Assembly: GCA_965285935.1 (NCBI GenBank)
Contig: OZ260662.1
Span: 37,882,001-37,946,000 of the forward strand
Direction of reading: 5' to 3'
Length of the DNA stretch: 64,000 nt
DNA from: Ophelia neglecta
Lineage: Eukaryota
Below the pieces are notes generated by a model that searched no databases, was not told where the DNA came from, and was given only the letters and a program-made list of their open reading frames with translations. Each line of letters begins with the position of its first letter. The stretch's first letter is position 1. The translations under genes were made by a program, and so were the position numbers. Shown one piece after another: positions 23,610-56,003 of the stretch.

Positions 23610-24243
23610 CTGCACGTTAGCTCGGCCCCTGCACGTTACCTAAGCCCTTTCACGTTAGCTCGGCCTCTGCACGTTACCTAAGCCCTTTCACGTTAGCTCG
23701 GCCCCTGCACGTTACCTAAGCCCTTTCACGTTAGCTCGGCCTCTGCACGTTAACCTTTCCCCTGCACGTTAGATCCACCACTGGATGTTAGCTCCGTCCC
23801 GGCACGTTACCTAAGTCCCTTCAAGTTAGCTCGGCCCCTGCACGTTAGCTCGGCCCCTTGACGTTATAGTTCCGCCCGTGCACTTTGGTTCCGCCCCTGC
23901 ACGTTACCTCAGCCCCTGCACGTTAGCTCGGCCTCTGCACGATAGCTCTTCCCCCGTACGTTATATCCGCCCCTGCACGTTAGATCCGCCCCTGCACGTT
24001 AGATCCACCCCTTCACTATAGCTCCGCCCCTGCACCTTAGCTTGGCCTCTGCACGCTATCTCTTCCCCGCACGTTACCTCAGCCCCTGCACGATAATTCT
24101 TCCCCCGCACGTTAGATCCGCCCCTGCACGTTAGATCCACCCCTTCACTATAGCTCCGCCCCTGCACCTTAGCTCGGCCTCTGCACGGTATCTCTTCCCC
24201 GCTCGTTACCTCAGCCCCTGCACGTTAGCTCCGCCCCTGCACG
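23610..24243. repeat. ~19-bp minisatellite (consensus CCCCTGCACGTTAGCTC(G/C)G), ~33 units, with higher-order structure
   Basis: Tandem units are seen directly, with a 38-bp dimer early in the array and a ~132-bp seven-unit block duplicated at ~23975 and ~24107. Confidence 0.95.
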
Positions 24244-27200
24244 GTAGTCCCTTCAAGGTGAAAATTTACCAGATATTTGTTCTTGCGTATATCTTCTGCC
24301 CATGCATTTAACATATGGCACACAGCAGGAAGTATTATTTTGGTTCTTTAACTATTAGTGTAGTTACTAGTTACCAACCATGGACCCATCGGAGTTTTTT
24401 TAAGAAAATAAAAACCGCCTTGTAAAAACATACATTGGTTAAAGCGTCATGACTTTCAGAACATGAGCCTATTTGTATATATATTTTGTTAACTAAACAA
24501 GTGGAAAACCATCTAACACTGCCCCACAGTCATCGAATAGTTCTCCCCATATCCTCATTGGTCTAAATATAAAACTAGCAATATGATTGCATATGTATAA
24601 AGTCCCATCACACGAATGCAAATGATATTGAGCTGGCAAAAGAGGGAATCAAGGCATCGGTACTAACTTTAATATTTATTATAACCCTTATACCCTATAG
24701 AAAACAGGAATTCTTCACAGACCTGACCTTCCTTACAACGCAAATTCGGCTTATTGTGTTTTTTGTGTCTAGGCACTGGATACTGTCATGCACGTCATCT
24801 CACCAACGATGAAAGTTGACCTCTGCTGGAGATCCCAGGTTATCAGCAACAACCATCCAGCAAAGCATACCACTAGTGACGTGGTGTCATGAAAGAGCAA
24901 TACTCGGGGGGAGAGGCTGGCATACATCGACTAAACTGGCCTACTTCACAAAAACAAAACACGGCCGGAGAATGAAGTAACATTGAGCCGTTCGACCTTT
25001 TACAGTGCCATTACAAGTGCTAATGACAGTAATTGACACCCAAACATCTTCATGTACGTTCCCATGATAAAGGAAATGAGCATGTTCAGACAGTCATTTC
25101 CACTTAATAATCGTGATATTGAGTGTTTGCAGGGAGCAGTCACGAAACATTGACATTGCGCAGTTTTGTATTCGTTTGTCAGCGAAATTGTAAATCATCT
25201 AAAAAGAACATGAATGATTTTACATTATTCGACAGAAGAGTTCATCTCTTTTAGTCTGACATTTACTGCTTGAGAATGATACTTGTCCGCGAGGCCAAGC
25301 TAGTTTTAGTTTCAGACGACATTAAAGCGCAATCCAACACGCTGGATATATCGCTCAGCCTCATAGAGCCTGCTAGTACCCCCTAGACAGCATCTGGCGG
25401 CTATATCTTTATCAACACTGTCCAGCAACCTGAAAAATCTCTCTAGGGTAAAAGTAAACAAACCAAAGCTCAGAGTGGTTGAAAGACTTATAATCACGCT
25501 TCATTCTGGGATCTGTTCAATCTGGGGCACTTTTTTGATTGGCCTATAAATAGATTGTTACCCATAGATTGGTGCTTTGGACGACCTTACCGCAAGTTAT
25601 TTCGGCCTTATGTGGGTATTTTGTTGATGAAAATTCTTTTCGAGTGCAAAACTACTGAAATTGAACCAAATCGAGGACCACAAGTTGAGCTGTATTACAG
25701 CGTAAACTGCCACGTACTAGCCTACACATTGTCGCACTAGTTTTGGCCATGGCTGACAATGGCATATAACTGAAACGTAAGCCGAACATTAAAAAAATGG
25801 CAAAGTCTAAAAAATATTTCTATATCTAACATTAGTCTCTCAATTTCGAGACCGCGGAAATGATCATAGACTCTCCAAGGGCATAATTAATCTCTGTCCT
25901 ATGCTTACTGACACCTTTGTTTTGTGTTCTGAAAATCATGGAAACTCTTCGCATTTGCAATTTGCATTACACGTTTATTTACTGCTTGGGACCTGGGGAA
26001 TGATGTATTGATGTTTTTGGGGCTGTGTCTGTTGATCCCGTATAGACTAAGACTAATGGATTATTCTAGATAATTGATTTAACTCTGTTTGCCGGGTAAC
26101 AACTCCCGTTTTCCCATCCTAGTGCTGACTCTCATGCGGCTGCTAGCACTCTCGTTCTCCGTCTCCTCCTTCTGCCAATCTTCGTGCTGACCCCCACATA
26201 CCTTTGACTTTCCTGGAATGTATGCCTAATCTGTGAACCACACGTTGTTATACGAACAAATGAGCGCCCATAGGCCTACTATGCCACCGTATTTCTGATA
26301 TACGCCACTGTGGGACAGGGCCATTAAAACCTTTTTTAGCGTATAATATACGCTGTGACGTACTTTGTGTAATATCTTTACCAGAAGGCCATGTTTCATT
26401 TTAACACAATTGTGTTCTTAGTTGGTCGACTTCGCTGACAGCTTTTAACGACACATTCGCAGCTGTAAAAATGAGAATCTCAAGAGGGCAGACATGCTAG
26501 TGTGAACCTATAGATCATTGAGGGAGGTTTTCGTGACTTCTAACTGGCCAATCATATTTCACGTGAAACGTAGAATGTGTTGTGTTTTTAGTTGGGTGGA
26601 CACCAATTGGTATTTTAAAAGCTCAAGTCAATGCCCCCTAGCTTTTTAGTTCTTATGTTACGCGGAAGAGTTCCACAGGTTTTAACTTAAGAAGTTCATT
26701 GGGGTATGGCCGTGATATTCAAACCTCAAAGGAGTTTTTCTTCTACCGTATTGTACATCGTTAAGACTTTGACCACGCATGGCTTATGTGAATCAGTTTC
26801 TTCTGGAACGATTTGGTTTGATGAAGTGTACCAAATCTTTAAAATATGTACTTTTTGCCATTTATTTTACCAAATGGGTTTTTAGGTCTTTTTTTTGTAT
26901 TCTTGATTATGTTACGTGAAAACCTCCTTAACAGTGGCCATTTTATTACCAACCAGTCTCCCATTCTCAGGGACTAGCGCGAGATCCCCATTTTTGTCTT
27001 CTATCTGTTCCACAAGTCTTGAAAATTCTATATTCTGCATAAGAAGTTTTTGACAATTGTATCAACATATCATGAAAATAAGACAAACCACAGGGTGTAT
27101 ATCAAACAAAATTTTAACTTGAAACTTATTGATAAAATTTCAGAAAGTGATAACAAAAAGGTAGACAATTTTGTTTGTATTATAAGGATGATTCCCCTAA

Positions 27201-43200: not shown

Positions 43201-46113
43201 CTGCATAAAAGGCCATTTGGTAATTTCTTCTAGAAGTCGTTTTAGACAATATTTGTTGATTATCTCAAAATTTCAATTCTGCATACTAGTATATGAGATT
43301 TTCATACGACGACGATACACTGCTTGACTGTTGTTCTTGTTCGTGCAAACAAAGCCAACTAAAGAACTAAACAAAATAGTTATATCCTTGCAACTGAAAA
43401 GCTCACGAATAAATAATACCGGTCCGTGTGGCTGTTTCCTGATTGACTGTCTGCCCGTTTTTTTGTAATTGAATTTTTTCCTACTGTATATGACTCTGCG
43501 ATGTGGTAAAAGACATATAGATTTAAATTGTTATCTTGTAAATTGACCATCCTAGTCTTAGAAGATGAATCGTTTATTCGTTGTAGGTTAAATGCGCATA
43601 TTGACCATGTCCTTAAAAAGACTTGACAAATACAAAATAACAAACGAGAAGAACAAAATGAAATTATATTTGTGGCATTACTTTTTAACATCACCAACTC
43701 TTAGAATTCCATCTCCCCTTTGGTAACCCATCTTTCCTTTCAATTTCATGAAAGGCGAGTCCCCTGGAGATTTCAACTTTTTCGTCCATCACGTCAATGC
43801 CTACAGACATATAAAAGTAATTGTTAATTAAACAATTGTTCGTGGATTGCAACATACACATCTTTAATATCTCCTGTAAATGTACTCATTATACCATTAA
43901 GACTTCTTTATCACCAGCGATTTTTTAAAGAAAAGAGAACAGCCATGCAGTCTACAGACACAAACTGAATGATGGTGTATCCGATTTCCATCATACCGCG
44001 TAGAGTGGTAGAGTCTTGTTTACAGCAAACTTCTCTCAAATATTGCTGCATCGCACGATTTATTGTTTTCGAACTTTTTTCAATTTTTTTACGATTCCGT
44101 TTTGTCTGTCGTCTACCCACTGTGGTTTTTACTTCTTCAAAAGATTGGAAGTACTAAATAGAGAGCTTGATCAATAACCCGAAACCTGAAATGTGCAATA
44201 ATTACCTTCTACCTTTTTATATGCTTCAGTATCACTAAAGATACTGGTAATATATCAGTTTAAAGAAGAACCAAGTTATATGACATTCGTTTTGGTTTAT
44301 GATAAATAAAACGGCAATAAAACATCAAAAAGAATGTGTCCCGAGCAAGTGGGAAAAGAGAAAATTGTTCATTTTTGAATAATACAATATCTAAGATTGA
44401 TGACCTATTTTATTTCACATGACTTACAAACACTCTTCATGTTCAACCCTCGATATTAGTGACTTCCTGTCATATTATTACCACCACAGGAGGCCTTGGA
44501 ATCTGTATTAACCTAAACTCAACCAAGACCAAGACAAATAGTTCAATAAAATTGCGGTTGGCCTAGTGCTCTTAGTATTCCATACTTGAGAAGTCCCATA
44601 TGGAGCTAGACAGTTTTATGGTGAAAGCCCCTCATTTTCCAGAGAGATAACTCCGTCGACAATGGTCAATAGAAATAGAGTAATGCTGCCAGATTGTCCT
44701 GGGATTTTCCTCTTGGCTGCCAGGCCAAGCAAAGTAGGGCGAATACATAGATATAATAACCGCTATTGCATTCTGTGATTCAATTTTTGCCTCAATAAAG
44801 ATGGTCTCGATTTTCTGTATAGAAGCTAATGATCGATTGGTAAAGCAGGAATGGTCAGGCCTGATTACATCTGTGTGCTAACCCCCAGAGTAGGAAGGGC
44901 ACTCAGCGCCGCACAGACTGGAACGACTCGGTATTCTATTACACTCAAGACCCCAAAAGTTGAGGCTTTATCGGAAAATGTATCCAAGCATATTTGCGCT
45001 GTTTACACGGTAACGCAGACCGTGCCATTGTCTTATTGCAGGTCGTCATATCACACACTTGTCAGGCTCTTTTTAACATACCTCTCAGGAGAGCTGCTGA
45101 TTCTATATTATCTAAAGTATAAGCCTCAGGGGCTGAACTCAGACCCAATTGCCATTCTCGGGTTTATCGCGTCTAAACGGTAAGGACGATAAAAGAAAAA
45201 GGGCAACAACACCACTCGCGTTCTAGCGACGATAGTAAGTTCGAATAATCTAGAATATATCTTGCATGGATCCAATTTTTTACATTTGAAGACGATAGTA
45301 CGACATACAACTTAGGTAGTACAGGTCCTGTCTGTTATAATAACACGTAGAAAAATGCCAATTATCTAATCTGTCTAAAGCTGGCAATGCAAATAATGTT
45401 ACGCTAAGCCCATCTAAGCAGATGGACTTAGCGTAAATAAAAAAAGGTAACAATAAAGTGACATTTTTTATATCCATGAAATACAAAATGGTAAAGAAAA
45501 TTGATCTGCATCGATCATTGGTGGTATATATAGCAATGCAGGCATTCGTATGTGTTGTATTGTCAAAACACCCAAAGGGGAGTTGTATGAACGAAACATC
45601 AAACACCGCCATAAAATTACTAAAACTATCAGCACTTTTTGCTAATCAAATACGTATTCATTCCATAGAAAATGAAAAGATCATTTTAAATTTCATGAAA
45701 ATCTTTCTAGCAGTCGATAGTTTTTTCGCTTTGCTCAGTAAATATACGAACTGTAAATTTATTCAACATTTATCTCTACTAGATACTGGCCAGACTCCTT
45801 ACAATAAACCTTTTATATAAATTTTAGTTATTGATATAACACAAATTGATTAACAGATTACTTTCAAAATGTTTAAGCAATAATAATAGTAGCATTTATC
45901 AAGTGCTTAGTATCCTCAGTATGCCTAGTTCAAAACCGCCGCTCTCAATAAGATATGACCAAACAATTATGGATACATATAAATCAGTTACTTTATGAAA
46001 AACAGCAATCAAATTTAAAAGAAAGGCCTTATTCAGTTTGAAAACAGGTCCGATTGTAAAACAATAATCACATATATAAAGAAGGCGCATAAAGTTAAGC
46101 ACTATCGGTCTCC

Positions 46114-46530
46114 ATAAGCCACCCTAAACAAATGGGCTTTGAGTTTCTTTTTAAACGATTCAGCAGATCTTACAATAGCCGGTTAGGAATTGCAGAATCT
46201 GGGACCGTATGATCTAAACGTTCGATCATCAGATCTAGATAGTCTTGCTTTTGGTTCATCGAGTACTGTCTTTGACTGAGACCGTAGAGCAAGAGTATGT
46301 TCGTTTCTCTGCAGCAGCTCGGAGATGGCCTGAAATCCATTCTGTGTTTCACTGGGAGAAAGTGTAGGTCATATAAGACCGATGTAATGTGGCCACGTAT
46401 CTTGGTATATGTGACCATTCTAGCAGCGTAGGTTTGAACTTTCTGCAACCGTTTAAGCAAATTGGCAGATATAGCACACAACAGGAAATTACAATTGTCA
46501 ATGCGGAATGTCACAAGTGCATTTACCAAC
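46114..46530 (-). mobile_element. Decayed L2/CR1-group LINE, 3' end of ORF2
   Basis: The minus strand reads VNALVTFRIDNCN...LKRLQKVQTYAARMVT...HITSVLYDLHFLPVKHRMDF, then in another frame GPRFCNS*PAIVRSAESFKKKLKAHLFRVAY. These match L2 ORF2 C-terminal motifs (SRLDYCN, HITPVL..LHWLP, LWNSLP, FK..LKTHLF). Confidence 0.88.
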
Positions 46531-46676
46531 GTGTTTGACCGTGTATTATCCCTGTCTAGATTATTGCAATAGTTTCCCGGCGAGGTATCTATTACCGTAT
46601 TTAAAACGACCGTCAGTATTTCGTAATCGCTTCCTGTTACAGTTTCTGTTAAAAAGGCGGCTTGAAGTTTCAGTTA

Positions 46677-47085
46677 TGCGACGGTTGTGGTTACACAACC
46701 GTGTTTTTCGCAGGGAAACAATAAGCACACATATACAGCATACGTGTTTTCTTAACCATTCTCCTCGTTTCATGTGTCGCGGCTGATTGCACTTCACTGC
46801 GGATGCCGAGGATAGCCTCGACCGCTAACCACACCTGATAGCCCTGAACCAAAAGACACCTGCACCACGTGACACACTCGGCCAATCGCGTGTCAGATCG
46901 CACAGGGAGCCAGTTTCCGGACTATTTTGAACTAAACTATCCTTCTCATCCCGACTTCGACCTGGAAAGACGTCTAGACTTCTCTCTCCGGAAACCTGCC
47001 TTCGATCGACATTTATTCTAATTTACTTACCTTTCGGACCTTTGTTTCAAAATCTATCTTTCGCTTATATCTGATTTTTTCTTTC
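46677..47085 (+). repeat. Split direct repeat A1 (409 bp)
   Basis: Matches 53165-53573 at offset 6488 with no mismatch found by eye. The ORF track gives the same 70-aa antisense ORF in both copies. Confidence 0.97.
46866..46915 (+). promoter_or_regulatory. Candidate Pol II promoter motifs in repeat A (E-box CACGTG 46866, CCAAT 46882, Inr-like CAGTT 46911); duplicated in A2
   Basis: The motifs are seen directly. A promoter role is inferred from their position in the 5' repeat. Confidence 0.35.
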
Positions 47086-47169
47086 TTTCTGGAGAGCCTT
47101 ATTTGTTTGGACAACCTAGATTCACCTCAGTTCAGGTACGTTCATAGTACGCTACTATACCATTTCATA

Positions 47170-47802
47170 ATGGCGAGTACCGGGTTCGTTTTCGGCCACA
47201 GTTTTGTGTCAGGTTTAAACCACCACCTCACTGGGTCTCGGGATGAGTTCAATCCCCAGTCTGTAGCACAGAAACTACGCCTTGATAAGGTCACCAAGAA
47301 TCTTTTCTTGTGTGGCGATCGAGGCGCAAAAGTTTTAGATTCAAATTGGTTACCGCCGGTCCGCCATCTTGAATTTTTCCAACCGGCATTTGCCATATTA
47401 GATATTGGTTCTAATGATCTCGCTTCTGGCGCAGAACCCCTCACTGTAGCTGTTCGGTTAGTAGATTTAGCTAAGGAGCTAAACACGTTGTTTGCCATCA
47501 ATCAGGTCACCATTTGCTCGATTTTACCCAGATCAGCTGGTTTGCCTGCACACTCACCTGAAAGTTTCTTAAACTCTATTTCGGCATGTAACAAACACAT
47601 TTTTCAACTGTGCAGCGTTGAAGCGCATGTACAATTCTGGCCCCATAAAGGTTTTTGGAATCGAGCCATAGATGAATGGTCTCTGGATGGCATTCATCCT
47701 AATTCTGATCTTGGCAGGACTTTATACAAAAAATCCTTGCGAGAAATCATTTTCAAAACTGTGCAGGCACACCACGCTTTCCCCCCCTCACATGAAGCTT
47801 AA
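47170..47802 (+). CDS. SGNH/GDSL-family hydrolase (esterase/lipase-like), element-encoded, about 210 aa
   Basis: Block I FVFGHSFV (catalytic Ser), block II GDRGA, block III DIGSNDL and block V DGIHPN (DxxH) are all present. The likely start is the ATG at 47170 (ataATGG context); the track start at 47107 is TTG. Confidence 0.9.
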   Translation: MASTGFVFGHSFVSGLNHHLTGSRDEFNPQSVAQKLRLDKVTKNLFLCGDRGAKVLDSNWLPPVRHLEFFQPAFAILDIGSNDLASGAEPLTVAVRLVDLAKELNTLFAINQVTICSILPRSAGLPAHSPESFLNSISACNKHIFQLCSVEAHVQFWPHKGFWNRAIDEWSLDGIHPNSDLGRTLYKKSLREIIFKTVQAHHAFPPSHEA

Positions 47803-47941
47803 TCTTAGCAGGCCTACCCCACTGACAACGCGTCGTGGGGAAAGCCCGCTACCCACCTTAACCCCCCCCCCCCCTCTCACACAACCGTCCATGGCCTCCT
47901 GTCTTTACACATAACCTATTTGAATGCACATGTTTCATCTA

Positions 47942-48659
47942 GGAGAGTCGGCTTCGGCCTCCAATTCTTGCTACCATGGGGACCGGCTTCGGCCCCGCGC
48001 TGCCATTGATACCATTTTGTTCTTATTGAACTTACTTGTTGTATTAAATTCCCTTCGAATATATTGACCCCAAACTAATTTTGCTTCCTTCAAAAATTTT
48101 GTTTCACCTGGCTTCTGACTTCCAGACTTTATAACATAAGCCGCCCTTTAAAATTCGAAATTCAATTTATAGCTTTGGGGACCGGCTTCGGCCCCAAGCT
48201 GCAGGTGCTAACCTTCATTTTACTGTTTGCCGGCCACGGCATATGTCACTTATCTCATGTTGGGGACCGGCTTCGGCCCCAACCTGCTTATTACCTTACA
48301 TTTTACAATTTGCCGGCTTCGGCATATGTTGGGACCGGCTTCGGCCCTGCCTGCAGTTGTCAACTTACACTTTACAGTTTGCCGGCTTCGGCATATGTCA
48401 CTTATCTCATGTTGGGGACCGGCTTCGGCCCCAACCTACTGTTGTCACCTTACATTTTACAATTTGCCGGCTTCGGCATATGTTGGGGGACCGGCTTCGG
48501 CCCCTACCTGCAGTTGTAAACTTACATTTTACAGTTTGCCGGCTTCGGCATACGTCACTTACCTCATGTTGGGGACCGGCTTCGGCCCCAACCTGCTGTT
48601 GTTACCTTACATTTTACTATTTGCCGGCTTCGGCATATGTTGGGACCGGCTTCGGCCCC
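47942..48659 (+). repeat. Array of about 15 CCG-GCTT-CGG-type hairpins; tandem units of ~85 and ~70 bp forming ~155-bp higher-order repeats (core 48177-48659)
   Basis: G-type hairpins G(3-5)-A-CCG-GCTT-CGG-C(3-4) at 47978, 48177, 48262, 48331, 48414, 48485, 48571 and 48642. T-type TGCCG-GCTT-CGGCA at 48228 (loop variant), 48311, 48380, 48465, 48537 and 48622. One variant copy at 47942. Confidence 0.95.
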
Positions 48660-48853
48660 ATCATCCCATACTGACCTAAATTTGATCAATTCATTAGTAC
48701 TACTTGGACATTCTCTGATTAACTGTTACTTAACATCCTGTGTCTACTCGACACACCCCTATGTGAAATACTACCCACACGTATTCTAGTTATGGCAGCT
48801 TCGCTGCGCCTTACAATTGTACTATTTTCTGCTGCTCTTTCCTTCTTACAGCC

Positions 48854-50254
48854 ATGCCTAAGGTTACACAAAAATCTTCCCGGCCCTCCGGATCCCTCTC
48901 CATGAAGTTGAAGGCACGAAGGAGATCCATGACCCCCTCCACAACTGAATCACCCCTCAGGAAAACCCGCACAAGACCCATATCAAAACCAGCACTTCCA
49001 ACCCAAAGACAGCAGCCGCTAAGAAAAAGAAGATTGCCAGCACGACTGGTGAATTCCTTTGAAACCCCTTCACTGTTAAGCGAGTCTGACCCACAGCCAA
49101 GCACTTCCACACAACCAGATCAACAACCAGCAGACATCACCCTACACACCATGGCAAATATGCAGCAAAGCATCATTGCTGGCCAACAACTTCTCAGTAG
49201 GCAGATGGAAACACTGATAGCTGTCCTAACCGCAAAACACAGGGAACCAGATACCCCTCAGCAGATCCTCCAAACAGAAAACCTCCAAGCGGGCAGCCCC
49301 GAATCCCCTCAAAATCTAGACACTGTCATTGATGCTCATGCTGCAACCTTAGATCAACAACATCCTTGCCTACCCCAGCCTGATCCTTACCAGACAGCTT
49401 ACCATCCGCAATCACAGCCAGGCTTCATGCAGCAGCCCCAGCCACCGGTCATGCCACCATCACAGCCCACTGACACCAGTCAGAATCAACACTCAGGAAA
49501 TTTCAACGGTGAGTTTCTAAATGTTCCCATAGTCGTTAACAACCAGCGTCCATCCACTTCATCTGGACTCCCTCTTGGAGCATGTGTGGACATGCAGATT
49601 AAGCAAAAAATTTGGGCCCATAAATATGTTGATCTTGCAGATATTCTCTATCCAAATCAGTCTCAATCTTACTCACTCCAATTCTCCGACCCAAGTTCTA
49701 CCCCCCAACTTAACCTCAATCCTCGTAGGAAAAAGCAGCTCACAGAAAATGAATGGAGTTCTGCAATGGACATTTATGTAGCTATATATGTGCAAAAATA
49801 CCCTTCCCACCTCAGTGACCTGCTTACATACTGCCATCACATCAAGCAGTTGATGCGTCGCGGAGCTGAATGGCGATATTATGATCATGAGTTTCGCACC
49901 CAGAGAGAGCACGCAGAAGTGCCATATTCTTGGGCAACTGTGCGACAAGACTTACAGCTAGATGCATATTTCCCCCTCCAACAATCCTCTCGGCCGCCAA
50001 ATTCTTTTCGTGCCCACCAAGAAAATCAAAAGGTCCCATCTGGCTATTGTTTCACCTTCCACCAAAGGGGGGTGCGATGCTTCAACAACCCATGCCCATA
50101 CAAGCACGAATGCCCTAGGTGCTCCAAACGCCACCCCATGTATTCCCAGTGTAGCTCTTTCACACTCACACGCCCTCAACAACCTCAGACCGCCCCCAAA
50201 CTCAAAGTTGCCAACCCCAGTACAATTAGGCGCCCTGGCCAAATATCTAAGTGA
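48854..50254 (+). CDS. gag: Gag-like ORF1 (466 aa) of the YR retrotransposon
   Basis: Basic and Q/P-rich N-terminal half. DIRS/Ngaro Gag-like core (IKQKIWAHKYVDLADIL...W...WRYYDHEFR...W) and a C-terminal Cys/His zinc-finger region CFTFHQRGVRCFNNPCPYKHECPRCSKRH. Confidence 0.9.
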   Translation: MPKVTQKSSRPSGSLSMKLKARRRSMTPSTTESPLRKTRTRPISKPALPTQRQQPLRKRRLPARLVNSFETPSLLSESDPQPSTSTQPDQQPADITLHTMANMQQSIIAGQQLLSRQMETLIAVLTAKHREPDTPQQILQTENLQAGSPESPQNLDTVIDAHAATLDQQHPCLPQPDPYQTAYHPQSQPGFMQQPQPPVMPPSQPTDTSQNQHSGNFNGEFLNVPIVVNNQRPSTSSGLPLGACVDMQIKQKIWAHKYVDLADILYPNQSQSYSLQFSDPSSTPQLNLNPRRKKQLTENEWSSAMDIYVAIYVQKYPSHLSDLLTYCHHIKQLMRRGAEWRYYDHEFRTQREHAEVPYSWATVRQDLQLDAYFPLQQSSRPPNSFRAHQENQKVPSGYCFTFHQRGVRCFNNPCPYKHECPRCSKRHPMYSQCSSFTLTRPQQPQTAPKLKVANPSTIRRPGQISK

Positions 50255-51782
50255 ATACGAACACGGAAAATACCTTCTTGATGGATTCAAATATGGTTTT
50301 GACATTAAATTTTCTGGCCCGGAAACCCCAACCCGATCAAAAAACTCTCAATCTGTATTAAAAAACCCTGAAATAGTACAAAGAAAGATAGAAAAAGAAA
50401 TAGCCCTTGGCAGAATTGCTGGCCCTTTTAAAAATCCACCCTTCCCCAATTTCAAATGTTCTCCATTAGCACTGAGAGAAAAACAATCTCCAGGCACATT
50501 TAGGCTCCTGCATAACCTGTCCTTTCCATATGATGAAACCTCTGTCAATAACAACATCCCTAGCGACTCCACGTCGGTTCAGTATGAAAGTATTAAAAAT
50601 GCAATATCACTCATTCAGCAGTGTTCACCAGGGGCCTTCATGGCAAAAAGTGACATAGCAGATGCTTTTCGGCTCATACCTATAAACCCTAAACAATATC
50701 ACCTAATGGGATTCCAATTTAAAGGGGAGTTCTATTACGACAAATGTCTGCCTATGGGGTGTGCATCATCTTGTAAAATTTTTGAAACTTTTTCAAATGC
50801 CCTGAAATGGATTTTGGCAAATAAATTTGATGTCCAAAACATTGTCAAAATACTTGACGACTTTCTTTTCGTGTCTCCACAACTCTCGACATGCCATAAG
50901 TACCTAAACATATTCCTAGCCCTATGTAAAGAGATTGGGGTCCCCATTGCCCCTCACAAAACACTAGGACCCTCCACTGCAGTAGTATTCATGGGAATAC
51001 ACCTAGACTCGATACAAATGACTGCTTCCCTTCCACCAGATAAACTAGCACGATATACGCAAGACATAAAAGATACTTTGGCACGCAAGAAATTAACTCT
51101 GAGAGAACTCAAATCATTGATAGGGAAATTACAATTTTCAACTTGCATAGTAACCTCAGGCAAACCATTTTTAAGACGCTTGCACGACCTTACCATTGGC
51201 CTTTCGAAACCGTTTTACTTTCTTCGCATCAGTCGAGGGGCAAGACAGGACCTCCAAACCTGGCTCAACTTCCTACAAAACTATAATGGAAAGTCCCTTA
51301 TGACAAAACCCTCTAACCTTGATTCGACCACAATACATCTCTTTTCCGATTCTTCCAAATTAGGCTTTGGAGCCACTTACAAAAACAATTGGATACAAGG
51401 GAAATGGCCCATCTCCTGGCAAACACTAAACATAGCCGTCCTGGAAATTTACCCCATACTTGCGATTATTGTAACATTTGCTAAACACCTAAGTCACTCA
51501 CACATAACATTCCACTGTGACAACCAAGCCGTTGTCGAAGTGATAAAAAAGCAGAGCTCAAAATGCCCCCGCATCATGGCCATCCTACGCCCACTCGTTC
51601 TTACCCTCCTCTTAAATAACATAACATTGCATCCCGTACATATACCAGGTATTGACAATGTTTTATGCGACAAAATTTCTCGATTCCAGGCGGACAAATA
51701 CACTCTTCTACAATATGGGATGAAGTCATCCCCCGTGTCGATCCCAGAGGAAATCCTTCCTCGCAACTACAACTTGGTTTAA
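49962..51782 (+). CDS. pol: Reverse transcriptase + RNase H (ORF2, 606 aa), overlapping gag and YR
   Basis: RT motifs FRLLHNLS, MAKSDIADAFRLIP, LPMGCASS and ILDDF. RNase H motifs FSDSS, IAVLEIYP, HCDNQAVV and HIPGIDNVLCDKISR. The true start is uncertain because conserved sequence begins near LPTPV (~50210). Confidence 0.96.
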   Translation: MHISPSNNPLGRQILFVPTKKIKRSHLAIVSPSTKGGCDASTTHAHTSTNALGAPNATPCIPSVALSHSHALNNLRPPPNSKLPTPVQLGALAKYLSEYEHGKYLLDGFKYGFDIKFSGPETPTRSKNSQSVLKNPEIVQRKIEKEIALGRIAGPFKNPPFPNFKCSPLALREKQSPGTFRLLHNLSFPYDETSVNNNIPSDSTSVQYESIKNAISLIQQCSPGAFMAKSDIADAFRLIPINPKQYHLMGFQFKGEFYYDKCLPMGCASSCKIFETFSNALKWILANKFDVQNIVKILDDFLFVSPQLSTCHKYLNIFLALCKEIGVPIAPHKTLGPSTAVVFMGIHLDSIQMTASLPPDKLARYTQDIKDTLARKKLTLRELKSLIGKLQFSTCIVTSGKPFLRRLHDLTIGLSKPFYFLRISRGARQDLQTWLNFLQNYNGKSLMTKPSNLDSTTIHLFSDSSKLGFGATYKNNWIQGKWPISWQTLNIAVLEIYPILAIIVTFAKHLSHSHITFHCDNQAVVEVIKKQSSKCPRIMAILRPLVLTLLLNNITLHPVHIPGIDNVLCDKISRFQADKYTLLQYGMKSSPVSIPEEILPRNYNLV

Positions 51783-52678
51783 ACAAACTTTTAAATGCCT
51801 CGATGGCCACAAGCACAAGCCGCGTTTACATTAGGCAATGGCAAGCCCTTTTATCTTTCATTACCCATGAATTACAACTGCCACCCACCCTCCCCGTGTC
51901 AGATTATACCTTAGCTTTATTTGTTACTCACCTCTTCCAACAGGGCCTTCGCCAGTCAACTATTCGAACATATATGTCGGCTATCTCCTTCGTTCACACC
52001 ATTAAAAAATTCCCAGACCCCACTAGTAGTGTTGTTGTTCGAAAAGCAATTGACGGGATCAAATCCCTGGAAAACTACGACTATGATAGCCACCAACTCC
52101 CAATCACAAAGTCAATATTGGAAAGACTTATCGATTCCATCCCTTTCTGCACAATGTCCCCTTATGATAGAACCATGTATAAAGCACTCTTTCTTATTAT
52201 GTACTATGCCTGCATGAGAGCATCCGAAGCTGTCCTGACCCAAACCCCTCAACACATGTTGCAACTTAATCAGGTTCAACCAAAAGGCAAAGACTTTCTC
52301 ATAACTTTTCGGTCTTTTAAACACTCGAAAAATCGCACAGCAACAGTTTTGTTACAAGCCTCAACTGAAAATCTATACTGCCCGTCTTATGCACTTCGTA
52401 ACTACCTCCTAAAAAGAGGACAACAAGACGGTGCGCTGTTCATAAACCAACATAAAATGCCCATTACAAGAAACACCTTTGCCATTTTCCTAAAACAATG
52501 CATGACTATGTCTGGAATTAATCCCGCACAATACAACACACATGGTTTCCGCATAGGCAGAGCCACACAAATGTCCTTACAAAATGAGAACGAACACACA
52601 ATAAAATCTGTCGGCCGATGGAGCAGTGACGCCTTCAAAACTTACATCAGACCCGCACATGTGCCTCTCCCACCCTAG
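51665..52678 (+). CDS. Tyrosine recombinase (ORF3, 337 aa)
   Basis: Catalytic set R (CMRASE), K (FKHSK), HxxR (HGFRIG), W (GRWSS) and Y (KTYIRP). The N-terminal core-binding region reads STIRTYMSAISFVH. Confidence 0.96.
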   Translation: MRQNFSIPGGQIHSSTIWDEVIPRVDPRGNPSSQLQLGLNKLLNASMATSTSRVYIRQWQALLSFITHELQLPPTLPVSDYTLALFVTHLFQQGLRQSTIRTYMSAISFVHTIKKFPDPTSSVVVRKAIDGIKSLENYDYDSHQLPITKSILERLIDSIPFCTMSPYDRTMYKALFLIMYYACMRASEAVLTQTPQHMLQLNQVQPKGKDFLITFRSFKHSKNRTATVLLQASTENLYCPSYALRNYLLKRGQQDGALFINQHKMPITRNTFAIFLKQCMTMSGINPAQYNTHGFRIGRATQMSLQNENEHTIKSVGRWSSDAFKTYIRPAHVPLPP

Positions 52679-52850
52679 AGCGCCCCGCACCTCAGCTAGT
52701 TTAATTGGGGTGACCAGCGTATGCTGCCCCCAGGCAGGGTTCTCTCCCGGGAAGACCAGCGTATGCTGCTCCCAACACATCCCCTTTATTCGCTCTATAT
52801 TTGTGGGATCCCGCTCAGTGTGCTACAAACGCCTGCACCCCTCGCTTATG

Positions 52851-53164
52851 GCGACCTTGCAGGGTATCCCACATTGTACATATTGATGCCTACTCTGTAT
52901 ATATGTTCATGTCGCTTCGTTAGTCATTATTGTACATACGTTAATAGTTATACTTAACTTTAACTAAGTCATATTTTGTAATCATATTTCGGTGTATGTA
53001 ATGACCAAATTATTCTACTATTGTTATTCGATTTCAACAACGTGTTTTCTAATTTCCTGTGATTATAATATTCAGAACTCTTTACCAATTCATAATTATC
53101 AAAATATTTAATAAATTTAATTAAACTCCTATGTGCCTTGTGTTATTGCTTTCCTAAAGAAAAA
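52851..53164 (+). repeat. Split direct repeat B1 (314 bp)
   Basis: Runs GCGACCTTGCAGGG...TTCCTAAAGAAAAA, matches 53624-53937 at offset 773, and directly abuts A2. Confidence 0.96.
53110..53152 (+). terminator. Candidate polyadenylation signal in repeat B (AATAAA 53110-53115 plus a GU-rich downstream element); copy at 53883-53888
   Basis: AATAAA is followed ~16 nt later by TGTGCCTTGTGTTATTGCTTT. Confidence 0.55.
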
Positions 53165-53573
53165 TGCGACGGTTGTGGTTACACAACCGTGTTTTTCGCA
53201 GGGAAACAATAAGCACACATATACAGCATACGTGTTTTCTTAACCATTCTCCTCGTTTCATGTGTCGCGGCTGATTGCACTTCACTGCGGATGCCGAGGA
53301 TAGCCTCGACCGCTAACCACACCTGATAGCCCTGAACCAAAAGACACCTGCACCACGTGACACACTCGGCCAATCGCGTGTCAGATCGCACAGGGAGCCA
53401 GTTTCCGGACTATTTTGAACTAAACTATCCTTCTCATCCCGACTTCGACCTGGAAAGACGTCTAGACTTCTCTCTCCGGAAACCTGCCTTCGATCGACAT
53501 TTATTCTAATTTACTTACCTTTCGGACCTTTGTTTCAAAATCTATCTTTCGCTTATATCTGATTTTTTCTTTC
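53165..53573 (+). repeat. Split direct repeat A2
   Basis: Copy of A1. Confidence 0.97.
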
Positions 53574-53623
53574 CCTCCCATCCCACCCGATTGTACATTT
53601 TGATGCCTACTCTGTATATATGT

Positions 53624-53937
53624 GCGACCTTGCAGGGTATCCCACATTGTACATATTGATGCCTACTCTGTATATATGTTCATGTCGCTTCGTTAGTCAT
53701 TATTGTACATACGTTAATAGTTATACTTAACTTTAACTAAGTCATATTTTGTAATCATATTTCGGTGTATGTAATGACCAAATTATTCTACTATTGTTAT
53801 TCGATTTCAACAACGTGTTTTCTAATTTCCTGTGATTATAATATTCAGAACTCTTTACCAATTCATAATTATCAAAATATTTAATAAATTTAATTAAACT
53901 CCTATGTGCCTTGTGTTATTGCTTTCCTAAAGAAAAA
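53624..53937 (+). repeat. Split direct repeat B2 (element 3' end)
   Basis: Copy of B1. Identity stops after AAGAAAAA at 53937. Confidence 0.96.
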
Positions 53938-56003
53938 CCATATCCCTATAAACTCATCCCCTCACTCTATACAAGTTATCAATACCAATATTTAATGCAG
54001 ATAAATGGATATTCCAGTAATTGAATTTTCAGATATGTGCACATATACGCAGTCCTATATATGGTTCGGTATTGATTCCCCTGATTGTATTGTGTCAATT
54101 AAAAACTAATCATTTCAAGTGCAATGGATTTGCATTCGTTTTTGCAGGATTTTTTTTAGAAACATTCTTGGCCTGTTGCGAGATCTTTGTTTGAGGTTTC
54201 CTATCGACTGAAGATAATATAAACTCATAAATGTTGCTCCCATCGGTAGTCATTCATCATTTAAAAACTATCTGACGTCCAACAGATGACTCCCCATACT
54301 TCCTCTATCAGATAACCTCCGATCGATCAACAGTGCCTACTAAGTTAGGAAAAACGAGAGATAAAACTTCCGGTTCATCTTATCATGTTTCATTGTTAAG
54401 GTTGAAAATGAGTGTGAGCCTCATTGAAAGGCGGGCGACGAAAGGTGTAGTACATCGTCAGTGCAATTTAGTGAGTATCTCATTTAGGAACACCAGAAAC
54501 ACAGTATTTTTTGTTTACCTGGAAAGGATAAAATACCCTGTTATTCTATAACTATGACAGTGACTTATGCAATACTAGTTTCCTTGTAACAGTCTAGGGT
54601 CGCACCATCAGGTGACTGGTGTTGGTGGTTGTGGATGGGTGTGTGGGTGTGATGGTGGTTATGCTAAAATATGACTTTGTTTAAATAATCAGAAACATGC
54701 TCTTTTGTGCCACTATTGTTTTCGACGTTCTTTCTTTTACTAACTGTGGAATTTTTTTTCTACAAAATGTGACTTTAGCTATGTGGACCCTCCTCTCCAC
54801 CCTTCCAATTATCAACATGAAAGGATTCGCCATCGTTGAAGTGGCATCATTTGTAACAAAGAATTTTCAAGTCTGGTTGTGTTGTGCCCGTGAAAGGTTA
54901 ATTGGCTTGTTAAACGAAACAGTTAAAAAAAATGATCCCCTTTTCAAAGGCCAGTAGAAGACGCATTGACCCTAAACAAATCGGTATCATTATATATAAG
55001 CTCAAGGCAATAAGAAGTTAAAGGTGTTAAGTGTCGACCAGCAAGATATTATTGTGCTGCAACTCCTCAAAATACAGCAAAATCATATCTGAACAAGTCT
55101 GCCAGCTCAAAATAAAAAGAATCTCCACACTTGATAAATTAACAGAAATTTCCCGATAGAGTTTGAAAGGAGATAACTGAATTGACGGTGAAACATCCCT
55201 GATGACCCATAAAAGCTCCCCTCGGGTGGGTAAATGCCTTCCAATTTGAGCATAAATATGGTTCTGCTTTGAATGACAGATGTGTCTCGGGAACGGCATG
55301 AAGTTGTTAACACACCCTGAAATAATGTGCCTCGTGAGACAGATTTGACATGTCCAATGGTGCCAAATGGAATTGGCTAGGAAACAAAAAAAGACTAGAA
55401 AATAATGATTATATTCTCCACACAATATATATTCGATCAGCTGTTATGTATTACTGTGTGTTCTAAAGAAAATTCTTGATATTTACAATAAACGGTTAAA
55501 ATCAATGTTAGCAATGTCCAATCTCTGATGCTCAATTGTAACACACTAACCACACATTTGTTACAATTTCTAGCTTTTTCGATACTGCCTTCATAAATCG
55601 TTCACTTAACATAGTGAGACTGTATTGCACGATTGAAGAGGTACAATTCAATCTCCATCCTTAGTTTGCGTGGACTTTTCACTTCCTTATCTGGCCTTAT
55701 CTTTTTTTTTTCGATCTATTCATCCGTAGTTTTAAGAGAAAGCTTGGTTGTCCTAGGACACAAGCCATCTCTTTCCTACGTCAACCACTGTTTCGTTTGT
55801 TTGGTGATACACTGGATCAATTTAATAAACTATTATTGAGGTTTGAGTTGTCTAGTTTCCCCGAGTATCCCTTCCCGCCTTTTTGTCGACTGTTCTTACC
55901 TCCGTTTACTCAACAAATACAGGTAACTCTTCAAAATAGTTGATATGCGTTGACAACAAATGAAGTATTTGGTATATTGTCGTTTCCTTAATCGTATATC
56001 AAT

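Follow-up and report, generated by a model that had tools for sequence, protein, structure and literature searches.

A young Ngaro-type retrotransposon with an SGNH esterase gene upstream of gag

An intact and recently inserted element

The window, a 64,000-nucleotide stretch of an Ophelia neglecta contig, contains one copy of a Ngaro-type retrotransposon that occupies 7,262 bp (positions 46676–53937) and carries four unbroken open reading frames (ORFs) on the plus strand. These encode an SGNH esterase, a gag-like protein, a reverse transcriptase/RNase H (RT/RH) and a tyrosine recombinase (YR). The complete order is A1, leader, SGNH, tandem hairpin array, gag, RT/RH, YR, B1, A2, spacer and B2 (Table 1), and the first-pass annotation of an intact Ngaro-type element with the gene order SGNH–gag–RT/RH–YR is thus confirmed. 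We consider it likely that this is a full-length, recently inserted member of a widespread, probably invertebrate, lineage in which the SGNH esterase gene lies 5′ of gag. The element is a real and young Ngaro whose probable novelty is the position of its hydrolase, the presence of a hydrolase in Ngaro itself having already been published.

Exact alignment, as the first-pass annotation had proposed, reveals that both pairs of split direct repeats are 100% identical (410 bp for A and 314 bp for B), and that the identity of each pair breaks off sharply at its ends. Because there are zero differences over 724 bp of paired repeats, the copy is a young insertion. The recent activity and autonomy proposed in the first-pass annotation are putative, being read from a single copy. 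The span had been given as 46677–53937, of which the end stands; the start is off by one base because an A at 53164 can be assigned either to the end of B1 or to the start of A2, and the element truly begins at 46676. The flanks (tttcagtt on the left and ccatatcc on the right) show no target-site duplication, and the junction is ambiguous by 1 nt only. No other fragments of the element were found within the 64-kb window. The CpG observed/expected ratio is 0.8, indicating that the genome around the element is not CpG-depleted and is therefore unlikely to be that of a vertebrate.

The four ORFs, which together make up about 4.7 kb, are open throughout, as first described, and are also the only long ORFs of the window: outside the element, the 64 kb hold no complete ORF of at least 130 aa except one of 132 aa. 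The accompanying remark that other coding transposable elements here are decayed was checked in part, through ORF length and through Pfam searches with the ten longest outside ORFs, in which no domain was found. No Rfam family was matched in the window, including the array and the rest of the element.

Table 1. Features of the Ngaro-type element, in window coordinates
Feature	Position	Strand	Description
Split direct repeat A1, 410 bp	46676..47085	+	100% identical to A2; presumed promoter and start of 5′ UTR
Unique leader, end of predicted non-coding exon 1	47086..47135	+	last part of a 330-nt stretch without ATG, ending at the donor
Predicted 5′ splice site, cag/GTACGT	47133..47141	+	PWM 10.2 bits, p=0.023 within the element
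SGNH/GDSL-type esterase ORF, 210 aa	47170..47802	+	ATG start; Pfam Lipase_GDSL_2, E=2.4e-7
Tandem array in predicted intron, 157-bp double unit	47979..48691	+	eight GGGACCGGCTTCGGCCCC hairpins, several GCCGGCTTCGGC hairpins
Predicted 3′ splice site, gctctttccttcttacAG	48834..48851	+	PWM 12.4 bits, p=0.001
gag-like ORF, 466 aa	48854..50254	+	basic low-complexity N-terminal half, conserved helical core, C-terminal Cys/His zinc-knuckle-like motif
RT/RNase H ORF, 606 aa	49962..51782	+	+1 frame relative to gag, 293-nt overlap; RVT_1, E=1.9e-11
Tyrosine recombinase (YR) ORF, 337 aa	51665..52678	+	−1 frame relative to RT, 118-nt overlap; Phage_integrase, E=5.7e-11
Split direct repeat B1, 314 bp	52851..53164	+	100% identical to B2; AATAAA at 53110
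Split direct repeat A2, 410 bp	53164..53573	+	abuts B1, 1-nt overlap
A2–B2 spacer, 50 bp	53574..53623	+	last 34 nt copy 52873–52906 of B with one mismatch
Split direct repeat B2, 314 bp	53624..53937	+	3′ end of the element; AATAAA at 53883, 54 nt before the end

The element is Ngaro-type, an assignment made by structure rather than by grouping of RT or YR with reference sequences. Specifically, it combines RT/RH and YR with an A1...B1–A2–B2 arrangement in which the internal repeats follow YR, and it has no methyltransferase domain, a lack that separates Ngaro from DIRS1 and PAT. The RT/RH ORF matches only RT and RNase H families in Pfam, with no methyltransferase, and is followed by YR.

Conserved coding capacity

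As the first-pass annotation had noted for the catalytic residues, all positions that are invariant among relatives are present in SGNH, RT, RNase H and YR. In RT these are D231 and L298-D299-D300, and in RNase H D463, E495, D520 and D570, with the Asp and Glu residues invariant among relatives. YR retains R185, K219, H293-x-x-R296 and Y327, corresponding to the R, K, HxxR and Y that do not vary among its relatives. A collection of 5.8 billion proteins yielded 528 RT/RH homologues, the closest of which is 58% identical.

The gag-like protein has no Pfam match and no PDB sequence match, and its model matched no PDB fold, capsid-like or other (Foldseek, E<=0.001). Its C-terminal half is 24–41% identical in nine related families, and the gag proteins all start MP or MAPP directly after the predicted acceptor. 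The name gag is used here for position and for the Cys/His zinc motif alone.

The upstream ORF encodes a protein with the hallmarks of the SGNH/GDSL superfamily, namely the Ser (GxS), Gly, Asn (GxND) and DxxH blocks and, in its model, a flavodoxin-like fold. Its Pfam score of 31.9 bits lies about 1 bit below the curated cut-off of 32.9 for Lipase_GDSL_2. The blocks G9-H10-S11, G52, G80-x-N82-D83 and D173-x-x-H176 are invariant in six homologues, and across 24 homologues each of Ser, Asn, Asp and His is conserved at 90% or above, up to full invariance. The AlphaFold model (pLDDT 79.5, pTM 0.82) resembles PAF-AH Ib, TesA and Bacteroides acylhydrolases in Foldseek searches (E about 1e-6, TM about 0.6). 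Because the catalytic Ser is residue 11, there is no room for a signal peptide. The protein is thus probably cytosolic and enzymatically active, of the PAF-acetylhydrolase/TesA type, and would have an accessory role.

At E<=1e-10, 979 clusters belong to this large and conserved SGNH family. The viral contigs scanned with the SGNH profile gave no match. An origin like that of the coronavirus/torovirus haemagglutinin-esterases finds no support: matches in a viral fold library were limited to phage tail esterases and generic SGNH proteins.

A layout shared by divergent families

Other assemblies and metagenomes contain the SGNH–gag–RT/RH–YR layout in at least ten related families, whose RTs are 45–58% identical. 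It is present in L001, L004, L010, L012, L014, L017 and L025, as well as in two places of ERZ26052378; it is circularly permuted in L015 and L022 and decayed in L005–L008. The first-pass suggestion of an undescribed subfamily therefore needs recasting: the upstream hydrolase layout is real, but it is not special to this copy, and because it is common to at least ten divergent families, any undescribed subfamily would be a broad lineage rather than a single element. Split repeats of the related families are 99–100% identical, spacers of 37–85 bp occupy the A2–B2 position in L001, L003, L004 and L005, and some relatives are present in other genomes as multiple copies with identical proteins. The only organism names among the related protein clusters are Lamellibrachia satsuma and Procambarus clarkii. 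In an RT tree built from relatives of the window element only, without reference Ngaro, DIRS1, PAT or VIPER sequences, the midpoint root divides the elements with a 5′ SGNH gene, and L003, which lacks SGNH, lies among them.

L015 and L022, in which SGNH follows YR, were rejected as cases of a 3′ hydrolase. Their YR-to-SGNH distance fits a path through B–A into the next leader, which implies that the contigs represent a tandem or circular form or were collapsed in assembly.

Elsewhere, SGNH proteins of the same family are encoded by a very different YR element, downstream of its YR gene, and by a Gypsy-type element, upstream of its gag gene. SGNH is thus a shuffled module. The former element, a marine-metagenome YR retroelement (L027–L032), encodes an SGNH protein that is 38% identical to that of the window over 92% of its length and that falls among the 5′-type SGNH proteins in a FastTree phylogeny without support values. 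By contrast, the two RTs are only 19% identical and YR is undetectable by tblastn. In this retroelement, SGNH directly follows an ALOG-domain YR, starting 4 nt downstream, and gag has a CCHC knuckle; no split repeats were seen in its contigs.

A predicted intron between leader and gag

Splice sites were predicted from sequence with a generic metazoan matrix, and ORFs were searched singly, since predicted exon 2 holds all coding sequence. There is no ATG from position 46806 to the SGNH start, and ATG-free leaders are a property of the related families too (p=9e-6). The predicted intron would start at 47136, 34 nt 5′ of the SGNH ATG, and each of 10 related families has an equivalent site in its leader (Fisher p=0.001 for 11 families). 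Exon 2 would start at 48852, only 2 nt 5′ of the gag ATG. In the 10 families scored, a pyrimidine tract followed by AG precedes the gag ATG by 2–24 nt (Fisher p=2e-8); the tract ends in CAG or TAG in seven families with a well-scoring acceptor, and acceptor scores are weak in three (L010, L017 and L025). The conserved donor-like and acceptor-like sites and the ATG-free leader support a retrovirus-like splicing design as read from sequence, and conservation across relatives likewise favours the splice architecture proposed in the first-pass annotation.

The structured repeat array of that annotation is also real, with eight hairpin copies and an RNA fold z-score of −3.4. Tandem arrays occupy the SGNH–gag spacer in six of ten families. 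Their units form stable hairpins in the window element and in L001, which those of L010 and L012 do not; from family to family the arrays show no sequence relationship, and some families have none. ORFs of 143–150 aa inside the array were dismissed as genes, being by-products of the repeat with no Pfam match.

These features suggest a model in which transcription would start within A1 and end past the AATAAA in B2. In unspliced RNA, the first start codon would be the SGNH ATG. This RNA would also be the template for copying, because copies keep the SGNH gene. The hairpin array, which this RNA alone would carry, is therefore a candidate signal for packaging or export. Removal of 47136–48851 would make the gag ATG the first start codon, with RT (+1 frame) and YR (−1 frame) then produced via recoding or re-initiation. 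The cDNA ends would be completed from the internal B1–A2 junction, and YR would insert the element without a target-site duplication. The circular intermediate attributed to Ngaro elements is a model, and a report on DIRS-1 describes cDNA intermediates that are linear and single-stranded (PMC7192593).

Comparison with known systems

The element resembles 3′-hydrolase Ngaro elements, such as Xenopus DIRS-53_XT (Goodwin & Poulter 2004, as summarised in PMC9210276), in its 100% identical A1...B1–A2–B2 repeats, overlapping gag, RT/RH and YR, lack of a methyltransferase and one extra SGNH hydrolase ORF. Unlike in the amphibian type described there, however, the hydrolase is 5′ of gag rather than after YR, and the window element has no SGNH-like sequence after YR. 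It differs further in the roughly 1 kb, including the tandem array, that separates SGNH from gag, and in the conserved splice-site-like signals that flank SGNH.

Esterases are known from other retroelements, as an SGNH domain in ORF1p of CR1/L2/RTEX LINEs and as GDSL ORF3 in bdelloid Vesta LTR elements and Athena, and membrane or lipid targeting has been proposed for them (PMC3905857, PMC5408684). All share intact catalytic residues with the window protein, and in LINEs the esterase also lies upstream of pol. Unlike the ORF1p domain of LINEs, the window esterase is a separate ORF, and the element classes differ. In sequence, the match of the window protein to 4c1b is insignificant (E=0.45).

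The predicted arrangement has a further parallel. Simple retroviruses have their major splice donor in the leader and their packaging or export signals in unspliced RNA only. Similarly, the window element has a predicted donor in an ATG-free leader, followed by sequence restricted to full-length RNA and by a predicted acceptor just before the downstream start. The roles are reversed relative to retroviruses, in that spliced RNA would encode gag–pol–YR and unspliced RNA the accessory gene, and integration is by a tyrosine recombinase.

Alternative explanations

We think it rather unlikely that the element is an ordinary member of a catalogued Ngaro family, although Repbase may hold an invertebrate DIRS/Ngaro consensus with a hydrolase upstream of gag. 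Ngaro elements are abundant in cnidarians and molluscs (114 and 53 instances; PMC4157794), a hydrolase has been known in some of them since 2004 (PMC9210276 and PMC7192593), and the layout is common enough in public assemblies that curators have likely met such elements. Yet the accessible descriptions, including those from amphibians, all place the hydrolase after YR, and an upstream hydrolase or an intron finds no mention in the accessible literature. Moreover, the nearest RT among the billions of proteins searched is the distant homologue noted above. Far less probable still is an old, domesticated or inactive copy whose repeats are kept identical by gene conversion and whose ORFs are open by chance or host selection. 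In favour of it is the single copy seen, with no second fragment in 64 kb; against it are four open ORFs with every conserved catalytic residue, two independent repeat pairs without a difference, and relatives elsewhere that show the same pattern, some of them multicopy with identical proteins.

It is also improbable, in our judgement, that no splicing occurs and that a single unspliced RNA serves for translation of both SGNH and gag, with gag reached by internal ribosome entry or re-initiation aided by the array and the pyrimidine tract (a Yn-Xm-AUG-like motif). In all families the tract immediately precedes the gag AUG, the window element and L001 have structured repeats upstream of gag, and retention of the 'intron' by copies is simplest if it is never removed. 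However, the tract ends as a splice acceptor would in the seven families with good site scores, and a matching AG/GT donor, which is independent of the acceptor, sits just 5′ of the SGNH AUG (p=0.001). The arrays are not a constant feature either, being unrelated in sequence, missing in some families and not always structured. Finally, in SGNH-less L003 the distance from A1 to the first ATG is 102 nt, similar to that of the predicted spliced leaders.

Implications

Tentatively, and at a little below even confidence, we propose a broad, undescribed Ngaro lineage with retrovirus-like alternative splicing as predicted from sequence. A leader-to-gag intron ending 2–24 nt before gag would hold SGNH and, where present, tandem repeats; full-length RNA would serve as genome and as esterase mRNA, and gag–RT–YR would be translated from spliced RNA. 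The esterase module would have moved between 5′ and 3′ positions and among Ngaro-like, ALOG-YR and Gypsy elements.

To our knowledge, YR retrotransposons are the least understood retroelement order, and essentially nothing is known of their expression, RNA packaging or the roles of their extra enzymes. If true, a conserved intron between the esterase gene and gag–pol–YR would rank among the early examples of regulated splicing documented for the order, and the spliced and unspliced RNAs would offer a simple handle on how genome RNA and mRNA are distinguished. LINEs, bdelloid LTR elements, Penelope-like elements, two YR lineages and a Gypsy element all include members with an SGNH esterase, which indicates that retroelements commonly need such an enzyme, for reasons still unexplained. 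The splicing and the esterase questions could both be addressed with the present copy, which is intact and young.

Structure and age of the element

A 7,262-bp segment of the Ophelia neglecta window (46676–53937) is a true Ngaro-type retrotransposon, both intact and young, with membership in Ngaro assigned by structure. Ngaro elements are defined by split direct repeats, a gag-RT/RH-YR gene order (RT/RH, reverse transcriptase/RNase H; YR, tyrosine recombinase) and the lack of a methyltransferase (PMC9210276, PMC4157794, PMC7192593), and the window element has all of these structural features. As the first-pass annotation proposed, an SGNH esterase/hydrolase gene joins the other three, and all four open reading frames (ORFs), which lie between repeats A1 and B1, are uninterrupted. 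Alignments with relatives likewise bear out the proposal that catalytic residues are present, as every residue that is invariant in the family is retained in the window copy. Only one other ORF of at least 130 amino acids (132 aa) occurs in the 64-kb window, and no Pfam domains were found in the ten longest ORFs outside the element.

Coordinates and characteristics of features in the window
Feature	Window positions	Strand	Length	Details
Repeat A1	46676–47085		410 bp	no mismatch to A2
Predicted splice donor	intron from 47136			cag/GTACGT, 34 nt 5′ of SGNH ATG
SGNH/GDSL hydrolase ORF	47170 (ATG)–47802	+	210 aa	GHS (Ser11), Gly52, GSND (Asn82), DGIH (Asp173, His176)
Tandem array in SGNH-gag spacer	47979–48691			eight strong GGGACCGGCUUCGGCCCC hairpins, z = -3.4
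Predicted splice acceptor	ends at 48851			gctctttccttcttacAG, 2 nt before gag ATG
gag-like ORF	48854–50254	+	466 aa	
gag/RT overlap	49962–50254			
RT/RNase H ORF	49962–51782	+	606 aa	RT: Asp231, LDD 298–300; RNase H: Asp463, Glu495, Asp520, Asp570
RT/YR overlap	51665–51782			
YR ORF	51665–52678	+	337 aa	Arg185, Lys219, His293-x-x-Arg296, Tyr327
Repeat B1	52851–53164		314 bp	no mismatch to B2
Repeat A2	53164–53573		410 bp	no mismatch to A1
A2-B2 spacer	53574–53623		50 bp	
Repeat B2	53624–53937		314 bp	no mismatch to B1
19-bp-unit tandem array	23610–24247			~33 copies of CTGCACGTTAGCTCCGCCC, higher-order period 132 bp

The repeats are arranged in the order A1...B1-A2-spacer-B2, wherein B1 adjoins A2 and a single A at position 53164 is common to both. 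Each pair had been described as looking identical, and exact alignment confirmed this, with identity dropping abruptly beyond the repeat ends. The 724 bp of paired repeats contain no differences, which places the 95% upper bound for pairwise divergence at ~0.4% (3/724). The insertion is therefore young; repeat identity is the sole line of evidence for its recent activity. No target-site duplication is present at the element flanks (...tttcagtt/ and /ccatatcc...), and no further pieces of the element were found elsewhere in the 64-kb window. The final 34 nt of the A2-B2 spacer are a copy, with one mismatch, of positions 52873–52906 inside B, resulting in a small triplication local to the B2 start.

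The coding strand of the element is C-rich and G-poor, with a GC skew of about -0.25 (window 46000–54000) compared with about 0 in the flanks, and its GC content over the same interval is 0.40–0.47 versus about 0.37. The ratio of observed to expected CpG is 0.74 in the element and 0.80 in the rest of the window, unlike that of a heavily methylated vertebrate genome. The 19-bp-unit array sits in a locally GC-richer stretch (22–26 kb).

SGNH and gag-like proteins

The SGNH ORF scores 31.9 bits against Pfam Lipase_GDSL_2, for which the cut-off is 32.9. A confident structural model built with six homologues (pLDDT 79.5, pTM 0.82) resembles SGNH enzymes in a fold search (TM ~0.6), including PAF acetylhydrolase Ib alpha, TesA, Bacteroides acylhydrolases and sialate O-acetylesterases. 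Fold comparison revealed no special resemblance to viral haemagglutinin-esterases. The protein lacks a signal peptide, given that the catalytic Ser is residue 11. Its family is large, with 2,648 cluster representatives at E ≤ 1e-3 and 979 at E ≤ 1e-10 in a full HMMER search, and includes a protein of the tubeworm Lamellibrachia satsuma.

The 466-aa ORF encodes a protein whose N-terminal half is basic and of low complexity, and which also has a conserved helical core and a Cys/His zinc motif. It has no match in Pfam, PDB sequences or PDB folds, and the name 'gag' is based on its position.

Relatives share an upstream esterase gene

A word search recovered 528 RT homologues, the best of which is 58% identical. 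The order SGNH-gag-RT/RH-YR recurs in loci L001, L004, L010, L012, L014, L017 and L025 from public assemblies and metagenomes, at two places of assembly ERZ26052378, and in two circularly permuted contigs (L015 and L022). The latter run YR, about 0.8–1.1 kb, SGNH and gag, an arrangement compatible with head-to-tail or circular forms, or else with assembly collapse through the A repeat. Split repeats in the A1...B1-A2-spacer-B2 order are present at 99–100% identity in L001, L003, L004 and L005–L008.

L005–L008 are four copies of one family in which the SGNH gene has decayed and YR is absent (ERZ26052449; for example, L005:2931–9481). Their gag and RT proteins are identical between copies, whereas SGNH is both truncated and frameshifted, and tandem repeats occupy the place of YR, where there is no YR ORF. 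This family resembles a non-autonomous derivative that was amplified recently and whose recombinase would be supplied in trans. SGNH is wholly absent from L003, and the crayfish copy L002 is 5′-truncated. In a weakly resolved RT tree, elements with a 5′ SGNH gene occur to either side of the midpoint root, with L003 among them, and this distribution suggests that the upstream gene is probably ancestral to the group and was lost in L003.

The reading frames keep a constant relation in the window element and in L001, L003, L004, L005 and L010, with RT always +1 relative to gag and YR always -1 relative to RT, such that YR returns to the frame of gag. This constancy hints at conserved recoding or re-initiation.

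A predicted intron encloses the esterase gene

The predicted splice donor and acceptor that flank the SGNH gene in the window recur in relatives, despite non-coding DNA that cannot be aligned. Donors in relatives (CAG/GTACGT in L022, CAG/GTATGT in L014, CAG/GTACAT in L010, CAG/GTAACA in L005, AAG/GTATGG in L004 and CAA/GTTAGT in L001) lie 2–83 nt 5′ of the SGNH ATG, and acceptors lie 2–24 nt 5′ of the gag ATG. When scored with a generic metazoan matrix against same-size windows inside each element, both donors (combined p = 0.001, 11 families) and acceptors (combined p = 2e-8, 10 families) stand out, and thus sequence comparison favours the splice architecture put forward in the first-pass annotation. 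Furthermore, the leader 5′ of the donor contains no ATG over 330 nt in the window element and over 61–208 nt in other families (combined p = 9e-6), and all gag proteins start with MP or MAPP directly after the acceptor. In the predicted spliced form, the coding parts are wholly within exon 2.

In the SGNH-less L003 (4397–4900), A1 and the first ATG are 102 nt apart, a distance close to the length of a predicted spliced leader, and no ATG lies close to the beginning of the main gag ORF. In crayfish L002 (5566–6079), a strong pyrimidine tract plus CAG immediately precedes the opening of the gag frame, which lacks an ATG for 460 nt.

The SGNH-gag spacer carries tandem arrays in six of ten families, with unrelated sequences. 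The array units of the window and of L001 fold well, whereas those of L010 and L012 do not, and no Rfam family matches the array. Because the array is downstream of the predicted donor, only unspliced RNA would carry it, and it is therefore a reasonable guess that the array could serve as a packaging or export signal of that RNA.

Some published Ngaro elements also carry a hydrolase ORF, but it is placed after YR (PMC9210276, PMC4157794, PMC7192593) rather than 5′ of gag as in the window element. In the accessible literature, excluding Goodwin & Poulter 2004, Poulter & Butler 2015 and Repbase, neither an upstream hydrolase nor an intron was found described for Ngaro. The 'undescribed subfamily' proposed initially is better stated as a broad lineage whose 5′ esterase gene lies within a predicted intron that is conserved, and of which the window element would be one new family-level member.

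The esterase as a mobile module

Other loci carry SGNH genes in different settings. One 7.9-kb contig (L009:801–7826) contains a single 2,341-aa ORF with six SGNH-like stretches and a faint OSK match, perhaps several esterase units in tandem that are read as a single gene. In ERZ26052378, the P0250 locus has two SGNH ORFs (334–335 aa) that are 4.5 kb apart and flanked by the same small ORFs. Neither RT nor YR is found between or just after them, and the sole RT of the locus is a minus-strand LINE-type ORF upstream; the locus may consist of an SGNH-bearing unit repeated in tandem.

Six metagenomic contigs, of marine and other origin (L027–L032), have the order gag(CCHC)-RT-ALOG-domain YR-SGNH, wherein SGNH starts 4 nt after YR (for example, L027:1409–6887). 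Their SGNH protein is 38% identical to that of the window and falls among the 5′-type proteins (FastTree, without support values), whereas their RT is only 19% identical. This pattern suggests that the esterase module was exchanged between distant YR element lineages. Moreover, a Gypsy-type LTR element (L026, 1122–7019; Retrotrans_gag, RVT_1, RNase H and rve integrase) carries, 6 nt upstream of gag, an SGNH gene that belongs to the same family but is more distant. These moves echo reports of esterases in LINE ORF1p and in bdelloid LTR and Athena elements (PMC3905857, PMC5408684). Judged from its location 3′ of YR in the metagenomic elements and 5′ of gag in the Gypsy-type element, the esterase appears to have changed both its position and its host element more than once.
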